Part shown: positions 15,429 through 39,555 of the stretch, piece after piece
How positions within the stretch are numbered: the stretch's first letter is position 1
Layout: the number at the start of each line of letters is the position of its first letter
IMG/VR virus record: IMGVR_UViG_3300037054_000148
Location: 62,001 to 126,000 of that record
Length of the DNA: 64,000 nucleotides
Strand: one strand, 5' to 3'
Made by a program: the position numbers and the translations under genes
The notes under the pieces: model-generated
Told to the model about the DNA's origin: nothing
Database searches by the model: none
The model's input: the letters and a program-made list of their open reading frames with translations, nothing else

Positions 15429-18400
15429 ATGTCTTCTAACTCGGTCATAGTTCTTCAGCCTGGGGTTCCTGGGGATCTTGGTCCTACAGGTGTGACCGGG
15501 GGAACTGGCAATACAGGTAACACCGGCATTGGCTTGACGGGACCGACCGGAGCGGCAGGGCCTCCAGGGGTGGGGTATACGGGTCACACAGGGGCTACAG
15601 GGCCTACCGGAGCAACCGCAGGTAACACTGGGGCCACCGGACCAACTAGCACGGTTCCTGGACCCACCGGACCATCAGGTTCGACTGGCCCAGAGGGGCT
15701 TCCTGGGGTAACCGGACCGACCGGAACCACTGGCCCCATCGGACCAACGGGAAATACGGCTGGAAATACAGGCGGCACTGGCCCTACAGGTCAAACTGGA
15801 AACACCGGCCCAGCAGGAACTTCCGGTTCGACCGGCTCCGCAGGGCTTCCAGGAAGCTCAGGATCGACTGGGAATACTGGGTATACCGGACCTACCGGAC
15901 CCAGCGGAGCTACAGATGGAAATACCGGCCCCACTGGTCCAACCGGCCCCTCCGGGGGGTTTGGGTTAACTGGAAATACTGGAGTTACGGGCTATCCGGG
16001 GTCAACCGGAGGCACTGGAGGCACTGGAGGCACTGGCCAGACCGGACCGACCGGAGCAACTGTTGGAAATACAGGTGGTACCGGACCCACCGGGGCAACT
16101 GGACAGACCGGCCCCTACGGTTCAACCGGAGGAACAGGGCAGACGGGTGTGGGGATTACCGGACCGACCGGAACCACCGGTTCTATTGGTCCTTCTGGGG
16201 CCACGGATGGAAATACCGGTGTAACTGGGGGTACCGGAGAGACAGGGGCAACGGGAAACACCGGAAATACGGGAAACACAGGGTCTGGAAACACCGGTCC
16301 GACCGGAATGACCGGCATGACTGGGGTTACCGGCCCCTCTGGGGCTACGGATGGCAACACTGGGCAGACCGGTTCGACCGGACAAACTGGTTCCACCGGT
16401 ATTCAAGGGACCACTGGTAAGACAGGGTTTACCGGCTCTACCGGCTCAACTGGCGCGACTGGCTCAAATATTGGTATCACAGGTGTAACCGGCCCGACTG
16501 GAATCACTGGAAACATCGGAAATTCAGGAACAACGGGGAATACTGGATCTACCGGCCCTACGGGTGCGACCGGACCGACCGGAACCGTTACCGGAGGCAC
16601 TGGAAATACTGGAAACACCGGTTCTACAGGATACACTGGCCCTACGGGTGCGACCGGACCGACTGGAACCGTCACCGGAGGCACTGGAAATACCGGTCCG
16701 ACTGGAAATACCGGCTCCACCGGAGGCACTGGTGCGCTCGGACCGACCGGAACCGTCACCGGAGGCACTGGGAACACTGGAAATACGGGAAATAGTGGCC
16801 CAACCGGACCAACCGGACCAACTGGTCCGACCGGAACCGTCACCGGAGGCACTGGGAATACCGGAAACACAGGAAATACGGGTTCAACTGGGTCTACGGG
16901 ACCGACCGGAGCCTCTGGGCCAACCGGAACGATGACCGGAGGCACCGGAAACACTGGAAACACCGGAGCAACAGGTAACTCTGGACCGACTGGGGCGACC
17001 GGACCGACTGGGACAATGACTGGGGGCACCGGAAATACTGGTGCGACCGGACCGACTGGAAAAACAGGCAATACTGGACCGACCGGAGCTACCGGACCGA
17101 CCGGAACTGTCACCGGAGGCACTGGAAATACCGGCAACACTGGAAATTCTGGTCAAACTGGTCAAACTGGGGCGACTGGGGCGACTGGACCCACCTCAAC
17201 GGTCACTGGGAATACCGGAAATACGGGAAATACGGGAAATAGTGGCTCAACCGGAACTACCGGAGCCACTGGAAATACCGGACCGACTGGAACCGTCACC
17301 GGAGGCACTGGAAACACCGGTCCGACTGGAAATACCGGCTCCACCGGAGGCACTGGGCTTACTGGAAACAGCGGAGCGACCGGAAATGTCGGTTTGACTG
17401 GAAATACCGGCCCAACTGGAAATACAGGACCAACCGGCGCTACCGGACCGACTGGAACTGCCACCGGAGGAACTGGAAACACTGGAAACACTGGAAATAC
17501 CGGTCAAACCGGCTCCACGGGTCAGACCGGACCGACTGGGGCGACCGGACCGACTGGGACAATGACTGGGGGCACCGGAAATACTGGTGCGACCGGTCAG
17601 ACCGGAGCCACTGGGCTCACCGGTAACCTCGGATCCAATGGAAATCAGGGAAACACTGGGAATAGTGGGACAACTGGAAATACAGGCTCTACGGGGGCAA
17701 CTGGACCAACGGGTGCGACCGGACCCACCTCAACTGTAACAGGAAACACCGGAAACACTGGCTTAACTGGCCCTACTGGAGCAACTGGGATCAGCGGACC
17801 CACCGGAGCAACCGGTCTCACAGGAAATAGTGGGGCGACTGGGGGAACCGGAGGAATCGGCTTGACTGGTAACACTGGTCCTACTGGAGCCACTGGTCCC
17901 ACCTCTACAGTTACAGGAAATACAGGAAATACTGGGGGCACCGGTCTAACCGGTCTAACCGGTGTGACCGGAGGAACTGGTCTTACTGGTTTGACTGGCA
18001 ACAGCGGAGCCACAGGGGGTACCGGCCTTACTGGGAACAGCGGAGCCACAGGAGCCCCCGGTCCCACCTCCACTGTCACCGGCCCTACGGGTGTGACGGG
18101 ACAGACTGGGCAAACCGGACAGACCGGACAGACCGGACAGACCGGACTTACTGGTGCGGCAGGCCAGACCGGCGCAACCGGCCCCACCGGCTTAACTGGT
18201 GTGCTGGCCCCAGGAAATACTGGAAATACAGGAAATACTGGTGGGACTGGCAACACCGGAATGACCGGTCAGACTGGCGCTGGAGTCCCCACTGGTGGGT
18301 ATACGGGTGAAGTGCTGACTAAGAACAGCACCACGGATTATGATGTCAGTTGGCAGCCATCAGCCGGTGGGACTGGTGGCGGGGGAGGAGCAACCGGGCC

Positions 18401-19883
18401 GACTGGGGCAACTGGACCAACCGGAGCAATCGGCCTAACCGGTATGACCGGTCAAACTGGTCAAACGGGAATTGGCTCTACGGGTGTCACTGGTGTCACT
18501 GGTGTCACTGGACCGACCGGAGCTACCGGATATGGAGCTACAGGTCAAACCGGTCAGACTGGGGCCACTGGACCGGCTGGCCCCTCTGGGGCTACCTCTG
18601 GTATTGTTGGGCCAACTGGACCCACGGGCTATACGGGCTCTACTCAGACGATATACAGCCCAGATCAGCCCCCCATCACCCCGTCCATTTACGATGATGA
18701 GTTCAGCACTCCTGGATTAAACGCAAAGTGGACCACCGTAAACTTCGGAAGTCTTACCACAACAGATGTAGATAACTCTATCCCAGACTGCCTTGCTATG
18801 GTAGCCACCAGCAGTATGAGTAATAACCTAGCCTGTGTGCTCCAGGCTCTACCTGCTGGAGATTTTACCGTATTCACGAAAGTGGGTATTGAGCAATCGA
18901 ATAGCACCGGAAACTCATCTACGGGTATTGTCCTGTCAACAACTAATACTGCTGCAACCGGAAGCCAGTGGTTAACTCGGCTGGCGGTTAATGGTTCCAC
19001 CTTGACACACGACATATATACCTGGAGCAACTTTAACACAGTAGGGGCTAGCCAGACTGGTACGATAACTGATCCTCAAGGTAGGTACATCAGGCTTAGA
19101 AGAGTGGGGTCTACATATTACGAAGCTTGGAGTGCCGATGGAAAAACATGGTCAGAAGTTCAGTTTTCTCCTGGTTTTTCACCTAACTATATCGGACTAT
19201 CAGTAAATCTTTTTGCAGTTCCTTCCACTGTGTCGTTTGAGTTTTTCCGCTATGTGGCGAATGGTGCGGCCACAAATATTCCTGGATCATGGGTTATCTA
19301 TGGAGCGGGGTCTCTAACTGGAACTCCAGGTCAGACAGGTGTGACAGGGCCGACTGGAAGCATCGGTTTTCAAGGGATTCAGGGACTGAGTATCACCGGT
19401 CAGACTGGAGCTACCGGCCCCGCTGGGCCATCCGGTGCAACCGCAGGTAACACCGGAGCCACTGGTCCGATTGGGCCGACTGGTCAGACCGGGCTTGGGG
19501 CCTACGCTCGTTACTCTTTCGCCTTCACCACTGCCCCCCTGCCCCCCAATACCGGATCTACCACCACAGTTGCTGCCGCATACAGCACCTTTGCGGTTCT
19601 GTCCATTCAGACCAGTAGTCCTGCTCGGGTCAGATTCTACGGAACCCTAGCTTATGCTACATCTGATTACTCTCGGCCAGTTTCTATCGATCCGACCGGA
19701 GCGACCGGTATGTATCTGGAGTGTGTGACCACTCTTACCACGCTCACACTCATTGTGACCCCCTCGGCTTTCTGTGCGAACGCAGACGCAGTAGAGACAA
19801 TGAACAGTTACATAACGGTTGAGAATTATGGTGTTTCTACTACTCCGATTACCGTTACCATTAATGCATTGAGGATGGAATGA
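15429..19883 (+). CDS. Collagen-like (Gly-X-Thr) virion fibre protein 1 with ConA/lectin-like and C-terminal domains
   Basis: 1484 aa; about 1000 aa of G-X-T triplets; DDEFS...WT...YIRLRRVG...WSADG.TW...YIGL...FEFFR lectin-like domain at about 18650-19260. Confidence 0.85.
15459..18640 (+). repeat. Collagen GXT coding repeat with higher-order [14 protein letters not shown] units
   Basis: Dense accgga/actgga 9-nt periodicity; recurrent ggaccgaccggaaccgtcaccggaggcactgg blocks. Confidence 0.9.
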
Positions 19884-38347: not shown

Positions 38348-39555
38348 GCAACCTTCCTAGCAAGAATATAGAAACTCCAAAACGCATCCGGATAGCAAGA
38401 ATACTCTTCTACACGTAGATTGGTGTTTTGATTGATCCATTTAGTTAGAGTGAGAGGGGATGGAGCCCATACGTGGTTATCCCCCACCCATAGCCCCCCA
38501 GGCTTCCACATTTCCATAGATGGGTGCGGTAGGTAGATTAAACAGGTTCCTCCAACCCTGAGAGAGGCATCCCACAATCTTAACTCTTCTCCCCATTCTT
38601 TTATATGTTCTAGGCAGTGAGAAGAGAAGATGTAGTCGAATGGAGCTTGGTTAAACCGGCTCCTCTCGCTTTCATTATGAATGGCGATGGCTCCTGGAAG
38701 TGGCCACTGACTGGAACCAACATCAAGCCCCTTTCCTCGGCAGTGCATTAAGGCGATGGGTTTAATTCCCTCCGTTCCATTACCTTCATTCAGGTATACT
38801 GGGTATTTCTCCTCTTGTAGGGCGGATTCGATTTCCCACGTTAACTCTGTCTTGTTCATAGCCCTCTGAACCCCTGGATAGGCTCGGGTGGCCGCAGGGT
38901 AGAGGGGGCTGTAAAATCCCACAATTTTTCTTACCCCAGTCGCATGAGCGATGTGAAGCCCAGAGCTATCGGGGCCAATGAACATATCAGCTTTGCGGAT
39001 AGCATCTACAAATTCTTCATTTGGCATTCCAGACCGAAGTAGGGTGATCGGATTTCCAGATTTTCGCATAAGCTCCATGGGGAGGTCTGATGCGGTAAAG
39101 TCTCGCCCATCTGCTCTCCCACTTTCTCGTAGTTGGATTACAATCGAGTGATCAGATTCAGGCCCGTAGGAGTTCAAACAGGGGGTTCGGCGCAAGAGTC
39201 GAACATTTGCAACCGCAGCAAACGCATCTACTCCATGTAGTCCACAAAGCTGCTCGATCACTCCATTAAAGGAGAAGTGGTTGACGGGAGTTTCCTCATC
39301 AAACAGCCCATTCATATCCGTAATGAGGGGTCCGGTTTCCATTTTTCCGTAACGGCTAAAATCGTCGTTCTCTAGGAGAACCCTCCACACGAATGGGCTG
39401 CCTGCTAACACCCAGGCATACTGCTTGTGAGTTCTGATGATGATTCGGGCCGGAGCATATTCATAATAGAGGGCTTCGATGGTTGGTTCGATCATCAACC
39501 AGTCCCCAATGCCACCACCTCTCGTAATCACGATATAGTTATAACCTTGGTCCAC
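38344..39555 (-). CDS. GT9-like glycosyltransferase fused to SAM methyltransferase
   Basis: 403 aa; GTG start after AGGAG; RGGGIGDWL and FIGPDSSGLHIA (GT9); GLDVGS, FDYIFSSHCLEH, LRVGG..LIYLP (MTase). Confidence 0.8.
   Translation of the reverse strand: MDQGYNYIVITRGGGIGDWLMIEPTIEALYYEYAPARIIIRTHKQYAWVLAGSPFVWRVLLENDDFSRYGKMETGPLITDMNGLFDEETPVNHFSFNGVIEQLCGLHGVDAFAAVANVRLLRRTPCLNSYGPESDHSIVIQLRESGRADGRDFTASDLPMELMRKSGNPITLLRSGMPNEEFVDAIRKADMFIGPDSSGLHIAHATGVRKIVGFYSPLYPAATRAYPGVQRAMNKTELTWEIESALQEEKYPVYLNEGNGTEGIKPIALMHCRGKGLDVGSSQWPLPGAIAIHNESERSRFNQAPFDYIFSSHCLEHIKEWGEELRLWDASLRVGGTCLIYLPHPSMEMWKPGGLWVGDNHVWAPSPLTLTKWINQNTNLRVEEYSCYPDAFWSFYILARKVA

Follow-up and report, generated by a model that had tools for sequence, protein, structure and literature searches.

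Our data lead us to propose that a 933-amino-acid (aa) fusion protein of an uncultured jumbo myovirus probably acts in the cytoplasm as a glycosylation enzyme devoted to collagen-like proteins of the Gly-X-Thr type, its substrates in this phage being two very long fibre proteins, ColA and ColB. The genes concerned lie in a stretch of 64,000 nucleotides (nt) – the window – that comprises positions 62,001 to 126,000 of IMGVR_UViG_3300037054_000148, a 313.6-kb contig. The evidence consists of sequence features, domain folds and a gene linkage that recurs in phages and in bacterial chromosomes.

A functional link between the enzyme and collagen genes is well supported in silico, and two elements of the picture have precedent: an enzyme with a GT-A fold followed by TPRs, encoded adjacent to its target, is known to glycosylate collagen Thr (the BclA3-SgtA pair), and phage virion glycosylation is known for the capsids and tail tubes of mycobacteriophages. 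Apparently not yet described are the fusion enzyme itself, how widely it is distributed, and the fact that in Gram-negative-type bacteria and jumbo phages it is paired with collagens; our literature search gave no relevant paper in which heptosyltransferases are connected with collagen-like proteins, or glycosyltransferases with the collagen fibres of phages.

Collagen-like fibres and the fusion enzyme

ColA and ColB are true collagen-like proteins of the Gly-X-Thr subclass. The initial annotation had described two huge collagens with Thr or Ser at most Y positions, and the counts bear this out: among the 343 triplets of ColA the Y residue is Thr in 266 and Ser in 22 (84%), and among the 265 of ColB it is Thr in 172 and Ser in 40 (80%). 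Pro, Asn and Ala are the commonest X residues in ColA, and Asn, Ala and Leu in ColB, where uninterrupted runs reach 76 and 110 triplets (110 being the longest). Gly and Thr together make up 53% of ColA, far above chance, and the protein shows a period of 28 residues – nine triplets plus one extra residue that forms a 'GTVTG' break. Since the underlying DNA repeats have diverged (84-nt unit, 71% matches), and since identical ColA and ColB genes occur in other samples (L002 and L004), an assembly artefact is unlikely.

Outside the triplets, the two proteins have in common a non-collagen knob of the same 16-letter sequence. In ColA the collagen is followed by the knob, a globular insert (residues ~1075-1297; possibly ConA-like, as a lead only), a short further collagen segment and a C-terminal domain with 34% identity to a protein of the cyanophage S-CAM1 of Synechococcus; ColB ends in a hydrophobic tail of 13 letters (26610-26657). 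Both match, via their repeats, many 'tail fiber' and 'collagen like minor tail' families of PHROGs (best 8e-148), and both match SclB, Lcl and SclA of NCBIfam at E values of 1e-57 to 1e-86, under the equivalog cutoffs. Their genes are sited among baseplate- and tail-like genes, in keeping with the earlier assignment to a virion appendage block. Collagen rises by 0.286 nm per residue, from which the collagen parts would span ~290 nm in ColA and ~230 nm in ColB. A tail module with two such genes is as compatible with long tail fibres or whiskers as with a dense, exosporium-like 'nap'.

The core enzyme, as we call the 933-aa protein, is a four-part fusion in whose sequence we saw neither a signal peptide nor a membrane segment. 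Across its three enzymatic domains the catalytic residues are invariant in an alignment of 30 sequences. The N-terminal S-adenosylmethionine (SAM)-dependent methyltransferase retains D85 and G87 of motif I in every sequence aligned, and its fold is closest to that of the nucleotide-sugar C-3'-methyltransferases TcaB9, KijD1 and MtmC (E ~3e-10). There follows a GT-A catalytic domain of family GT2 which, searched against the sequences of the PDB, matches ThuS (3e-12), GmaR (4e-9) and SunS (3e-8), in a range of matches from 3e-12 to 5e-8, and whose closest match among phage records is yolJ of SPbeta, which is SunS. The next part, an all-helical TPR domain, aligns with the TPR parts of SunS and ThuS and with those of OGT and SPINDLY; it is presumed to be the substrate-binding module.

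The analogy with SunS and ThuS drawn in the initial annotation thus finds support in sequence and fold alike. For residues ~206-600 the best matches, in sequence as in fold, are the glycocin S/O-glycosyltransferases SunS and ThuS (PDB 7msn, 7msk), together with GmaR, a flagellin O-GlcNAc transferase of Listeria; by Foldseek the GT2-TPR part aligns with SunS and ThuS at E ~2e-18 over ~398 columns. All share a GT-A domain followed by helical repeats, and the known enzymes act on peptide or protein acceptors. A match to TIGR04195, the SunS family, at 42.3 bits (E 4e-11) falls far below the equivalog cutoff of 350 bits, which indicates shared superfamily and architecture with SunS rather than membership of the same orthologous group. 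The known enzymes are only 18-20% identical to ours and lack its extra methyltransferase and GT9-like domains, and their acceptors are a helical hairpin peptide or flagellin, whereas that of the core enzyme is probably a repetitive collagen. A GT2-TPR architecture like that of SunS, ThuS, GmaR and SgtA fits a protein-directed enzyme.

The C-terminal part is a GT-B domain of heptosyltransferase-like, GT9-like type. Its fold aligns with the GT9 structure 3tov (Foldseek E 1.8e-9, TM score 0.58), the motif G633-A-x-G636-D637 is invariant, and sequence matches are weak (PF01075 at E 0.06; NCBIfam RfaQ at 6.6e-5, and heptosyltransferase III). Searches of PDB sequences with phmmer and with a 24-sequence profile gave nothing significant, the best GT9 match being 3tov at E 0.64, and did not reach TibC or WaaC; a tblastn search of plasmids with the domain, aimed at aah or tibC, returned no match. 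A loose alignment with OGT and SPINDLY spans the TPR and GT-B halves together. All 30 aligned sequences carry the Cys cluster C874-x2-C877-x14-C892-x14-C907, which lies in a loop-rich insert of the C-lobe where the model has no secondary structure between residues 870 and 905.

This cluster invites comparison with TibC and AAH, protein O-heptosyltransferases of the BAHT family, which modify TibA and AIDA-I. TibC, for which PDB structures exist (PMC4358343), has an iron finger formed by Cys339/342/358/370, in the pattern C-x2-C-x15-C-x11-C, and heptosylates autotransporter Ser in the cytoplasm. The core enzyme is like it in having, by pattern match only, four clustered Cys in the C-lobe of a heptosyltransferase-like GT-B domain, and in the hyperglycosylation, proposed here, of a long repetitive protein in the cytoplasm, with later export in the bacterial cases. 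It differs in lacking the N-terminal beta-barrel, the GT9-like domain starting at ~625 right after the TPR helices; in having collagen-like proteins rather than autotransporters as neighbours; and in that collagen forms a triple helix rather than a beta-helix.

Linkage of enzyme and collagen genes in phages and bacteria

Loci were drawn from viral contigs, species-representative bacterial genomes and metagenomes, and every open reading frame (ORF) in them was scanned for Gly-X-Y runs. A locus counted as collagen-positive if a Thr/Ser-rich collagen-like ORF of at least 20 triplets lay within 10 kb of the enzyme gene; enzyme sequences were clustered at 70% identity. The family comprises at least 519 proteins at E<=1e-5, mostly full length and at 45-60% identity, many of them on contigs of 100-290 kb. 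With all sources combined, a collagen gene lies within 10 kb in 12 of the 20 enzyme clusters. The comparison sets give 0 of 17 for control bacterial loci of at least 8 kb that have a distant GT2 match only (Fisher p = 7e-5), and 10 of 65 for viral loci that have a distant GT2-TPR match only (p = 2e-4). The co-occurrence of Gly-X-Thr collagens with glycosyltransferase genes that the initial annotation proposed to look for is thus found, and it reaches beyond related phages. A separate metagenome scan gave eight positives among 12 full-length loci having at least 5 kb of flank on each side.

The association extends to bacterial metagenome-assembled genomes (MAGs) of Casimicrobiaceae/Burkholderiales and other betaproteobacteria, where 13 of the 15 loci with enough upstream flank are positive (against 0/17 controls, p = 3e-7 by locus and p = 5e-4 after clustering at 70%). 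Here one or two Thr/Ser-rich collagen genes end 64-1880 nt upstream of the enzyme gene on the same strand. Elsewhere the layout is different: L066 has its collagen gene 389 nt downstream of the enzyme gene on the same strand, and for the window, L006, L007, L063 and L065 the distance downstream is 1.5-7.6 kb, with the two genes on opposite strands. That the arrangement varies between lineages argues for functional linkage rather than one inherited synteny. The collagen of L063, a Gly-X-Thr protein of 2064 aa, carries a homolog of the globular insert of ColA.

Some more distant GT2-TPR genes also lie close to collagen genes. In four phage loci (L095, L101, L107 and L117) they directly follow collagen-like genes. 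In Tunturi_5, a cultured 309-kb soil phage of Acidobacteria and the nearest cultured relative of the window phage, gp35 is a stand-alone GT2-TPR protein of 368 aa encoded six genes from gp29, a collagen-containing fibre annotated 'tail fiber protein' and the counterpart of ColA; between gp29 and gp35 lie counterparts of the four paralogs that separate ColA from ColB.

Two further observations concern the make-up of the enzyme among relatives. The enzyme gene of L007 (10001-12756) has a stop at codon 626 that splits it exactly at the TPR/GT9 boundary, and four bacterial loci (L027-L030) have a version without the GT9-like domain that still follows a collagen gene. What stays constant beside collagen is the methyltransferase-GT2-TPR unit, which is usually accompanied by the heptosyltransferase-like domain; the remaining domains are confined to particular lineages.

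One bacterial example, L016, a Casimicrobiaceae MAG contig, has an island (3975-9940) inserted between housekeeping genes whose collagens carry Sec signal peptides. Between two of these signal-peptide Gly-X-Thr collagens the island encodes an Invasin_D3/Big_1 protein, a secreted four-Cys peptide of 94 aa, and a secreted protein of 281 aa whose sorting tail is IPTL-CTERM-like. The island looks like a surface-fibre locus.

The closest functional parallel is SgtA of Clostridioides difficile, a 358-aa GT-A and TPR protein encoded next to bclA3, which in vitro transfers beta-O-GlcNAc onto Thr of the BclA3 GPT repeats in a Mn2+/Mg2+-dependent manner (PMC7157674). The initial annotation invoked this precedent, and the correspondence, for which SgtA was compared by its published description, extends to both architecture and gene adjacency: a GT-A domain is followed by TPRs near a Gly-X-Thr collagen gene, gp35 of Tunturi_5 (368 aa) is of nearly the same size, and the Mn2+/Mg2+ requirement is that expected of a DxD enzyme. 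Adjacency is immediate in the bacterial loci and L066, and a matter of 7.5 kb in the window. Unlike SgtA, the core enzyme adds an N-terminal methyltransferase and a C-terminal GT9-like domain, and it occurs in Gram-negative-type bacteria and phages rather than with Firmicutes spores, the predicted substrate in the phage being a fibre assembled in the cytoplasm.

One relative, from a contig of 240 kb, bears on the sugar donors. In this locus (L014, 1-16849) the enzyme is 56% identical to that of the window, and downstream of its gene, with overlapping ends, lie genes for a GmhA-HldC fusion, GmhB and a heptose-7-phosphate kinase, the kinase above its equivalog cutoff; upstream are rmlA and rmlC, both above their cutoffs, and further epimerase/reductase genes. 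By its predicted functions the set is a complete ADP-D,D-heptose route together with a dTDP-rhamnose route, and the ADP-heptose pathway is indirect support for the predicted heptosyltransferase activity of the GT9-like domain. The window contains no ADP-heptose pathway genes. Beyond its heptose genes, L014 also encodes two tailspike-like proteins of pectate-lyase fold.

The operon, its neighbours and the phage

The core enzyme gene is the last of four on the minus strand (34210-39555) that overlap by 1-4 nt and are translationally coupled (Table 1). Together they encode three glycosyltransferase and four methyltransferase domains, and the count given in the initial annotation is correct by Pfam, NCBIfam and Foldseek. 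Its description of the operon as next to the collagens holds in that the two are near one another; they are not immediately adjacent, the operon lying 7.5 kb past ColB on the opposite strand, with two large structural genes and two homing endonuclease genes between. A fifth operon gene was considered at 33434-34243 and rejected, since this minus-strand ORF, which overlaps the core enzyme gene at the 3' end of the latter, encodes a homing endonuclease (GIY-YIG/NUMOD3). A promoter and terminator scan of the operon gave no excess over shuffled sequence, and so bears on neither timing nor transcription units.

The idea of a dedicated seven-domain operon survives in part. Of the four genes, only that for the 933-aa enzyme is conserved as a partner to the collagens; the other three are accessory. 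They are missing from L005, L006 and L008, relatives of 83% identity that retain the collagens and in which a homolog of 39651-40073 immediately precedes the enzyme gene, and they are absent from all bacterial loci; the complete operon occurs elsewhere only in L007, L063 and L023, at 45-84% identity. L023 (JBAXTA010000121.1, a 'Spirochaetota' MAG) was considered as a bacterial case without collagen and rejected, since it is almost certainly a phage contig misbinned with a bacterium: its 12 kb, with a downstream flank of 2 kb only, hold the full four-gene operon and homologs of four other window phage genes, among them those at 12101-13096, 31784-33424 and 39651-40073.

Each accessory protein can be assigned to a family or a fold. 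The 403-aa protein joins a GT9-like part, which matches PF01075 at 22.8 bits against a cutoff of 22 (E 6.6e-5) and is without the Cys cluster, to a class I methyltransferase (Methyltransf_23, 29.8 bits against 27). Recent duplication as the source of the GT9-like domains of the 403-aa and 933-aa proteins was rejected, as the N-terminal GxGD motif is all that they have in common. The 251-aa FkbM-family protein also exceeds the PF05050 cutoff (41.4 bits against 22.7, 2.2e-10). The 194-aa protein has no match in Pfam, NCBIfam, PHROGs or PDB sequences; its model resembles cation-dependent class I O-methyltransferases (Foldseek E 5e-7, TM ~0.55), and it belongs to a large, mostly viral family with 1600 cluster representatives at E<=1e-3.

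From ~1 to 33.4 kb the window holds a block of large structural genes on the plus strand, with few and weak matches to baseplate and tail PHROGs. The four paralogs between ColA and ColB form a virus-only family with no Pfam or PHROG matches; they are 26-28% identical to gp30-33 of Tunturi_5, which occupy the same position beside the collagen-containing gp29. They are probably fibre-associated, perhaps serving as tips, adaptors or chaperones of the fibres. Neither the 1328-aa nor the 546-aa protein matches a Pfam family above threshold. The 196-aa ORF that begins 4 nt past the ColB stop has a weak 'virion structural protein' PHROG match, and a homing endonuclease gene overlaps its 3' end; the junction may mark a longer fibre gene that has been disrupted.

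The phage, a myovirus, can be placed by its 1291-aa tail sheath, which is 42% identical to the sheath of Tunturiibacter phage Tunturi_5, the only protein with which it aligns over its full length. Tunturi_5 is a distant relative, reached by protein-level searches only; the 11.8-kb operon region had no megablast match among GenBank phages, and a locus search with the gene upstream of ColA yielded near-identical contigs only. Scattered through the 64 kb are at least five GIY-YIG and NUMOD3 homing endonuclease genes, several of which overlap the ends of structural or enzyme genes, and their content varies among relatives (L005 and L006 lack the one at 40879-41532). A UvrD/Rep-type helicase gene is apparently interrupted by an intein, a Pfam Intein_splicing match (residues 474-507) falling between its N domain (6-233) and C domain (560-883). 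No tRNA genes were found in the window.

Table 1. Positions in the window of the genes and domains discussed in the text.
Feature	Position	Strand	Remarks
Possible further homing endonuclease	11134-12108	+	
ColA, 1484-aa collagen-like fibre protein	15429-19883	+	343 Gly-X-Y triplets, 34 runs of at least 4
~290-aa paralog, tandem, between ColA and ColB	19880-20758	+	
~290-aa paralog, tandem, between ColA and ColB	20749-21660	+	
~290-aa paralog, tandem, between ColA and ColB	21858-22733	+	
~290-aa paralog, tandem, between ColA and ColB	22735-23631	+	
ColB, 873-aa collagen-like fibre protein	24036-26657	+	265 Gly-X-Y triplets
196-aa ORF	26661-27251	+	
Homing endonuclease, GIY-YIG/NUMOD3	27179-27781	+	
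1328-aa Thr-rich structural protein	27784-31770	+	many copies of motif 'T..L.D.TK.W..NQWAGY'
546-aa structural protein	31784-33424	+	three tandem ~130-aa repeats ('HGFxxGDxxxxDGTxW...SEVYGxVS...')
Homing endonuclease, GIY-YIG/NUMOD3	33434-34243	-	
Core enzyme, 933 aa, four-part fusion	34210-37011	-	model from 30-sequence alignment, pLDDT 89
Core enzyme, GT-B, GT9-like (heptosyltransferase-like) domain, residues ~625-930	34222-35139	-	invariant G-A-x-G-D motif
Core enzyme, all-helical TPR domain, residues ~428-619	35155-35730	-	Pfam TPR_2, TPR_14, TPR_16; helices in model
Core enzyme, GT-A (GT2) catalytic domain, residues ~245-430	35722-36279	-	invariant D345-x-D347-D348
Core enzyme, Cys-rich zinc-ribbon and class I SAM methyltransferase, residues 1-235	36307-37011	-	Pfam Methyltransf_23, 7.8e-10
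194-aa accessory protein, small class I SAM-dependent methyltransferase fold	37011-37595	-	AlphaFold model, pLDDT 92
251-aa accessory FkbM-family methyltransferase	37592-38347	-	TIGR01444, 64 bits against cutoff 37.7, 2e-17
403-aa accessory protein	38344-39555	-	GT9-like residues 1-245, class I methyltransferase ~290-400
403-aa protein, methyltransferase part	38356-38688	-	
403-aa protein, GT9-like part	38821-39555	-	
Homing endonuclease, GIY-YIG/NUMOD3	40879-41532	+	
UvrD/Rep-type helicase, 912 aa	42574-45312	-	
Homing endonuclease, GIY-YIG/NUMOD3	47580-48377	+	
Tail sheath, 1291 aa, unusually long	50921-54796	+	Pfam sheath C-terminal domain covers last ~90 residues only
Homing endonuclease, GIY-YIG/NUMOD3	54720-55421	+	

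Proposed pathway, alternative substrates and implications

A critical issue is how such an enzyme might work. Collagen chains would be made in the host cytoplasm late in infection; the TPR domain would bind their Gly-X-Thr repeats, unfolded or folding, and the GT2 domain – of the SunS/ThuS/GmaR/SgtA type – would set a first sugar on the hydroxyls of Thr or Ser in Y positions. The GT9-like domain, with its putative four-Cys metal finger, may then add heptose from host ADP-heptose, either onto the first sugar or onto Ser/Thr directly, and the N-terminal methyltransferase would methylate a sugar. In this phage and a few relatives the accessory genes, with a second GT9-like transferase and three methyltransferases, would decorate the glycan further. 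The linkage to Thr, the sugars and the order of the steps are proposals, and the methylation could be placed otherwise: the glycans may be methylated, or the methyltransferases may act on nucleotide sugars or on protein. N-glycosylation was considered and rejected on reading the sequence, the Gly-Asn-Thr-Gly repeats having no N-x-S/T sequon.

Such a pathway would yield tail fibres of great length, triple-helical and glycosylated, for which the candidate benefits are stabilisation of the helix in place of hydroxyproline, shielding from proteases or antibodies, or adhesion. Collagens of this kind are familiar from elsewhere: Bacillus BclA and the cuticle collagen of Riftia are Gly-X-Thr proteins with O-glycosylated Thr, the glycans of BclA include methylated sugars, and glycosylated Thr in Y position stabilises the triple helix without hydroxyproline. 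Those collagens, unlike the present ones, belong to a spore surface and an animal cuticle, and the rhamnose/anthrose cluster that glycosylates BclA is unrelated to the fusion enzyme.

Several points count against an enzyme dedicated to collagen. The case is made in silico, for a phage that is uncultured. Phage glycosyltransferase genes often lie near tail-fibre genes for other reasons, and Gly-X-Thr is the commonest form of prokaryotic collagen, so that Thr in Y position is not specific to glycosylation. Within the window, 7.5 kb separate the operon from the collagens, which are on the other strand, and since most of the bacterial examples come from one order they are not fully independent. 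The GT9-like assignment is based on fold and weak sequence matches, HMMER finds no similarity to TibC, and TibC is outside the top 50 Foldseek matches. Finally, about one third of enzyme clusters show no collagen gene in the 10 kb seen (loci L060-62, L064, L069, L145, L151, L156 and L179). The largest such phage clade comprises L009, L010 and L012, with an enzyme 59% identical to ours. A walk along the 286-kb contig of L012 revealed structural gene order as in the window and, ~29 kb from the enzyme gene, a 1260-aa fibre that starts with 24 ColB-like Gly-X-Thr triplets; genome-wide, the pairing of enzyme and collagen thus holds in this clade too, the collagen being much shorter.

The alternatives differ in what the enzyme is taken to modify. 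Other virion proteins – the capsid, the sheath, the 1328-aa protein or the four paralogs – might be glycosylated instead of, or besides, the collagens. Phage-encoded enzymes that glycosylate the C-termini of capsid and tail-tube proteins are established for mycobacteriophages (Che8, Corndog and others; Freeman et al. 2023). These actinobacteriophages use a different enzyme family in different hosts, and here the likely target is collagen-like fibres. In the window the operon does abut structural-protein genes (those for the 1328-aa and 546-aa proteins), and in some relatives the enzyme gene lies beside large non-collagen virion proteins. Yet only a collagen-like gene recurs as a neighbour across phages and bacteria, most loci lack the paralogs and the 1328-aa and 546-aa proteins, and the bacterial islands are without any virion protein; we consider this alternative unlikely. 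Less likely again is modification of the host envelope (lipopolysaccharide (LPS) core, O-antigen or surface glycan) for superinfection exclusion or receptor masking. GT9 enzymes, it is true, are classically LPS-core heptosyltransferases, and what weak matches NCBIfam gives are to heptosyltransferase III and RfaQ; O-antigen clusters often contain FkbM and GT2 enzymes; and PHROGs places the GT2-TPR family (phrog_13126, matched by the GT2 part at 6e-33) in the class 'moron, auxiliary metabolic gene and host takeover'. However, the GT2 domain groups with peptide and protein glycosyltransferases and not with polysaccharide synthases, a TPR protein-binding domain is present and membrane segments are not, the invariant Cys finger resembles that of the protein-directed TibC, and the bacterial enzyme adjoins secreted collagen-like proteins rather than LPS clusters.

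Hypermodification of phage DNA with glycosylated or methylated bases, as a defence against restriction, strikes us as very improbable: none of the seven domains falls in a known DNA glycosyltransferase or DNA methyltransferase family, the enzyme family occurs in bacterial chromosomes beside signal-peptide collagens, and the TPR and SunS-like features suggest a protein substrate, even if phage glycosyltransferases often act on DNA, a deoxynucleoside monophosphate (dNMP) kinase gene lies 2.4 kb from the operon, and gp35 of Tunturi_5 is near genes for thymidylate synthase, dCMP deaminase and a nucleotidyltransferase. We give as little credence to a true glycocin enzyme of SunS/ThuS type, acting on a small Cys/Ser peptide destined to be a secreted antimicrobial, with the collagen linkage a coincidence. 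In its favour, no fold or sequence match is better than SunS and ThuS, SunS (yolJ) is itself prophage-borne, and the L016 island encodes the secreted four-Cys peptide; against this stand a score of 42 bits where the equivalog cutoff is 350, a statistically strong collagen linkage, and the finding that neither a glycocin precursor nor export and maturation genes (ABC transporter/peptidase, thiol-disulfide oxidoreductase) were seen among the ORFs and domain matches of the window. These alternatives are rendered less likely by the protein-type GT2-TPR region, by the lack of membrane segments and, above all, by the bacterial islands with their secreted collagens.

Beyond a collagen-directed enzyme in this phage, it is possible, though we hold it doubtful, that a widespread and hitherto unrecognised module exists in Burkholderiales-like bacteria of soil and freshwater and in jumbo phages: a Gly-X-Thr collagen with one fusion enzyme that joins a methyltransferase, an initiating GT2-TPR part like SunS and SgtA, and a TibC-like heptosyltransferase with a metal finger, in which fibres of ~0.2-0.3 micrometre would be stabilised and shielded by methylated heptose O-glycans on hundreds of Thr. 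Were this so, a phage fibre would be known to carry glycans, and a collagen to carry heptose, for the first time.

The finding, if true, has practical as well as biological consequences. An enzyme that modifies (Gly-X-Thr)n repeats as one polypeptide would be useful for making glycosylated recombinant bacterial collagens, and the gene-pair rule – the enzyme beside a Gly-X-Thr ORF – would flag likely glycoproteins in metagenome annotation. The enzyme would be a new multi-domain type, possibly combining initiation, extension and methylation on one scaffold. Tail fibres would join the short list of glycosylated phage structures, with effects on host recognition, on the stability of virions in the environment and on recognition by antibodies; and dedicated collagen glycosylation would extend from the spore coats of Firmicutes and from animals to Gram-negative bacteria and the virions of phages.

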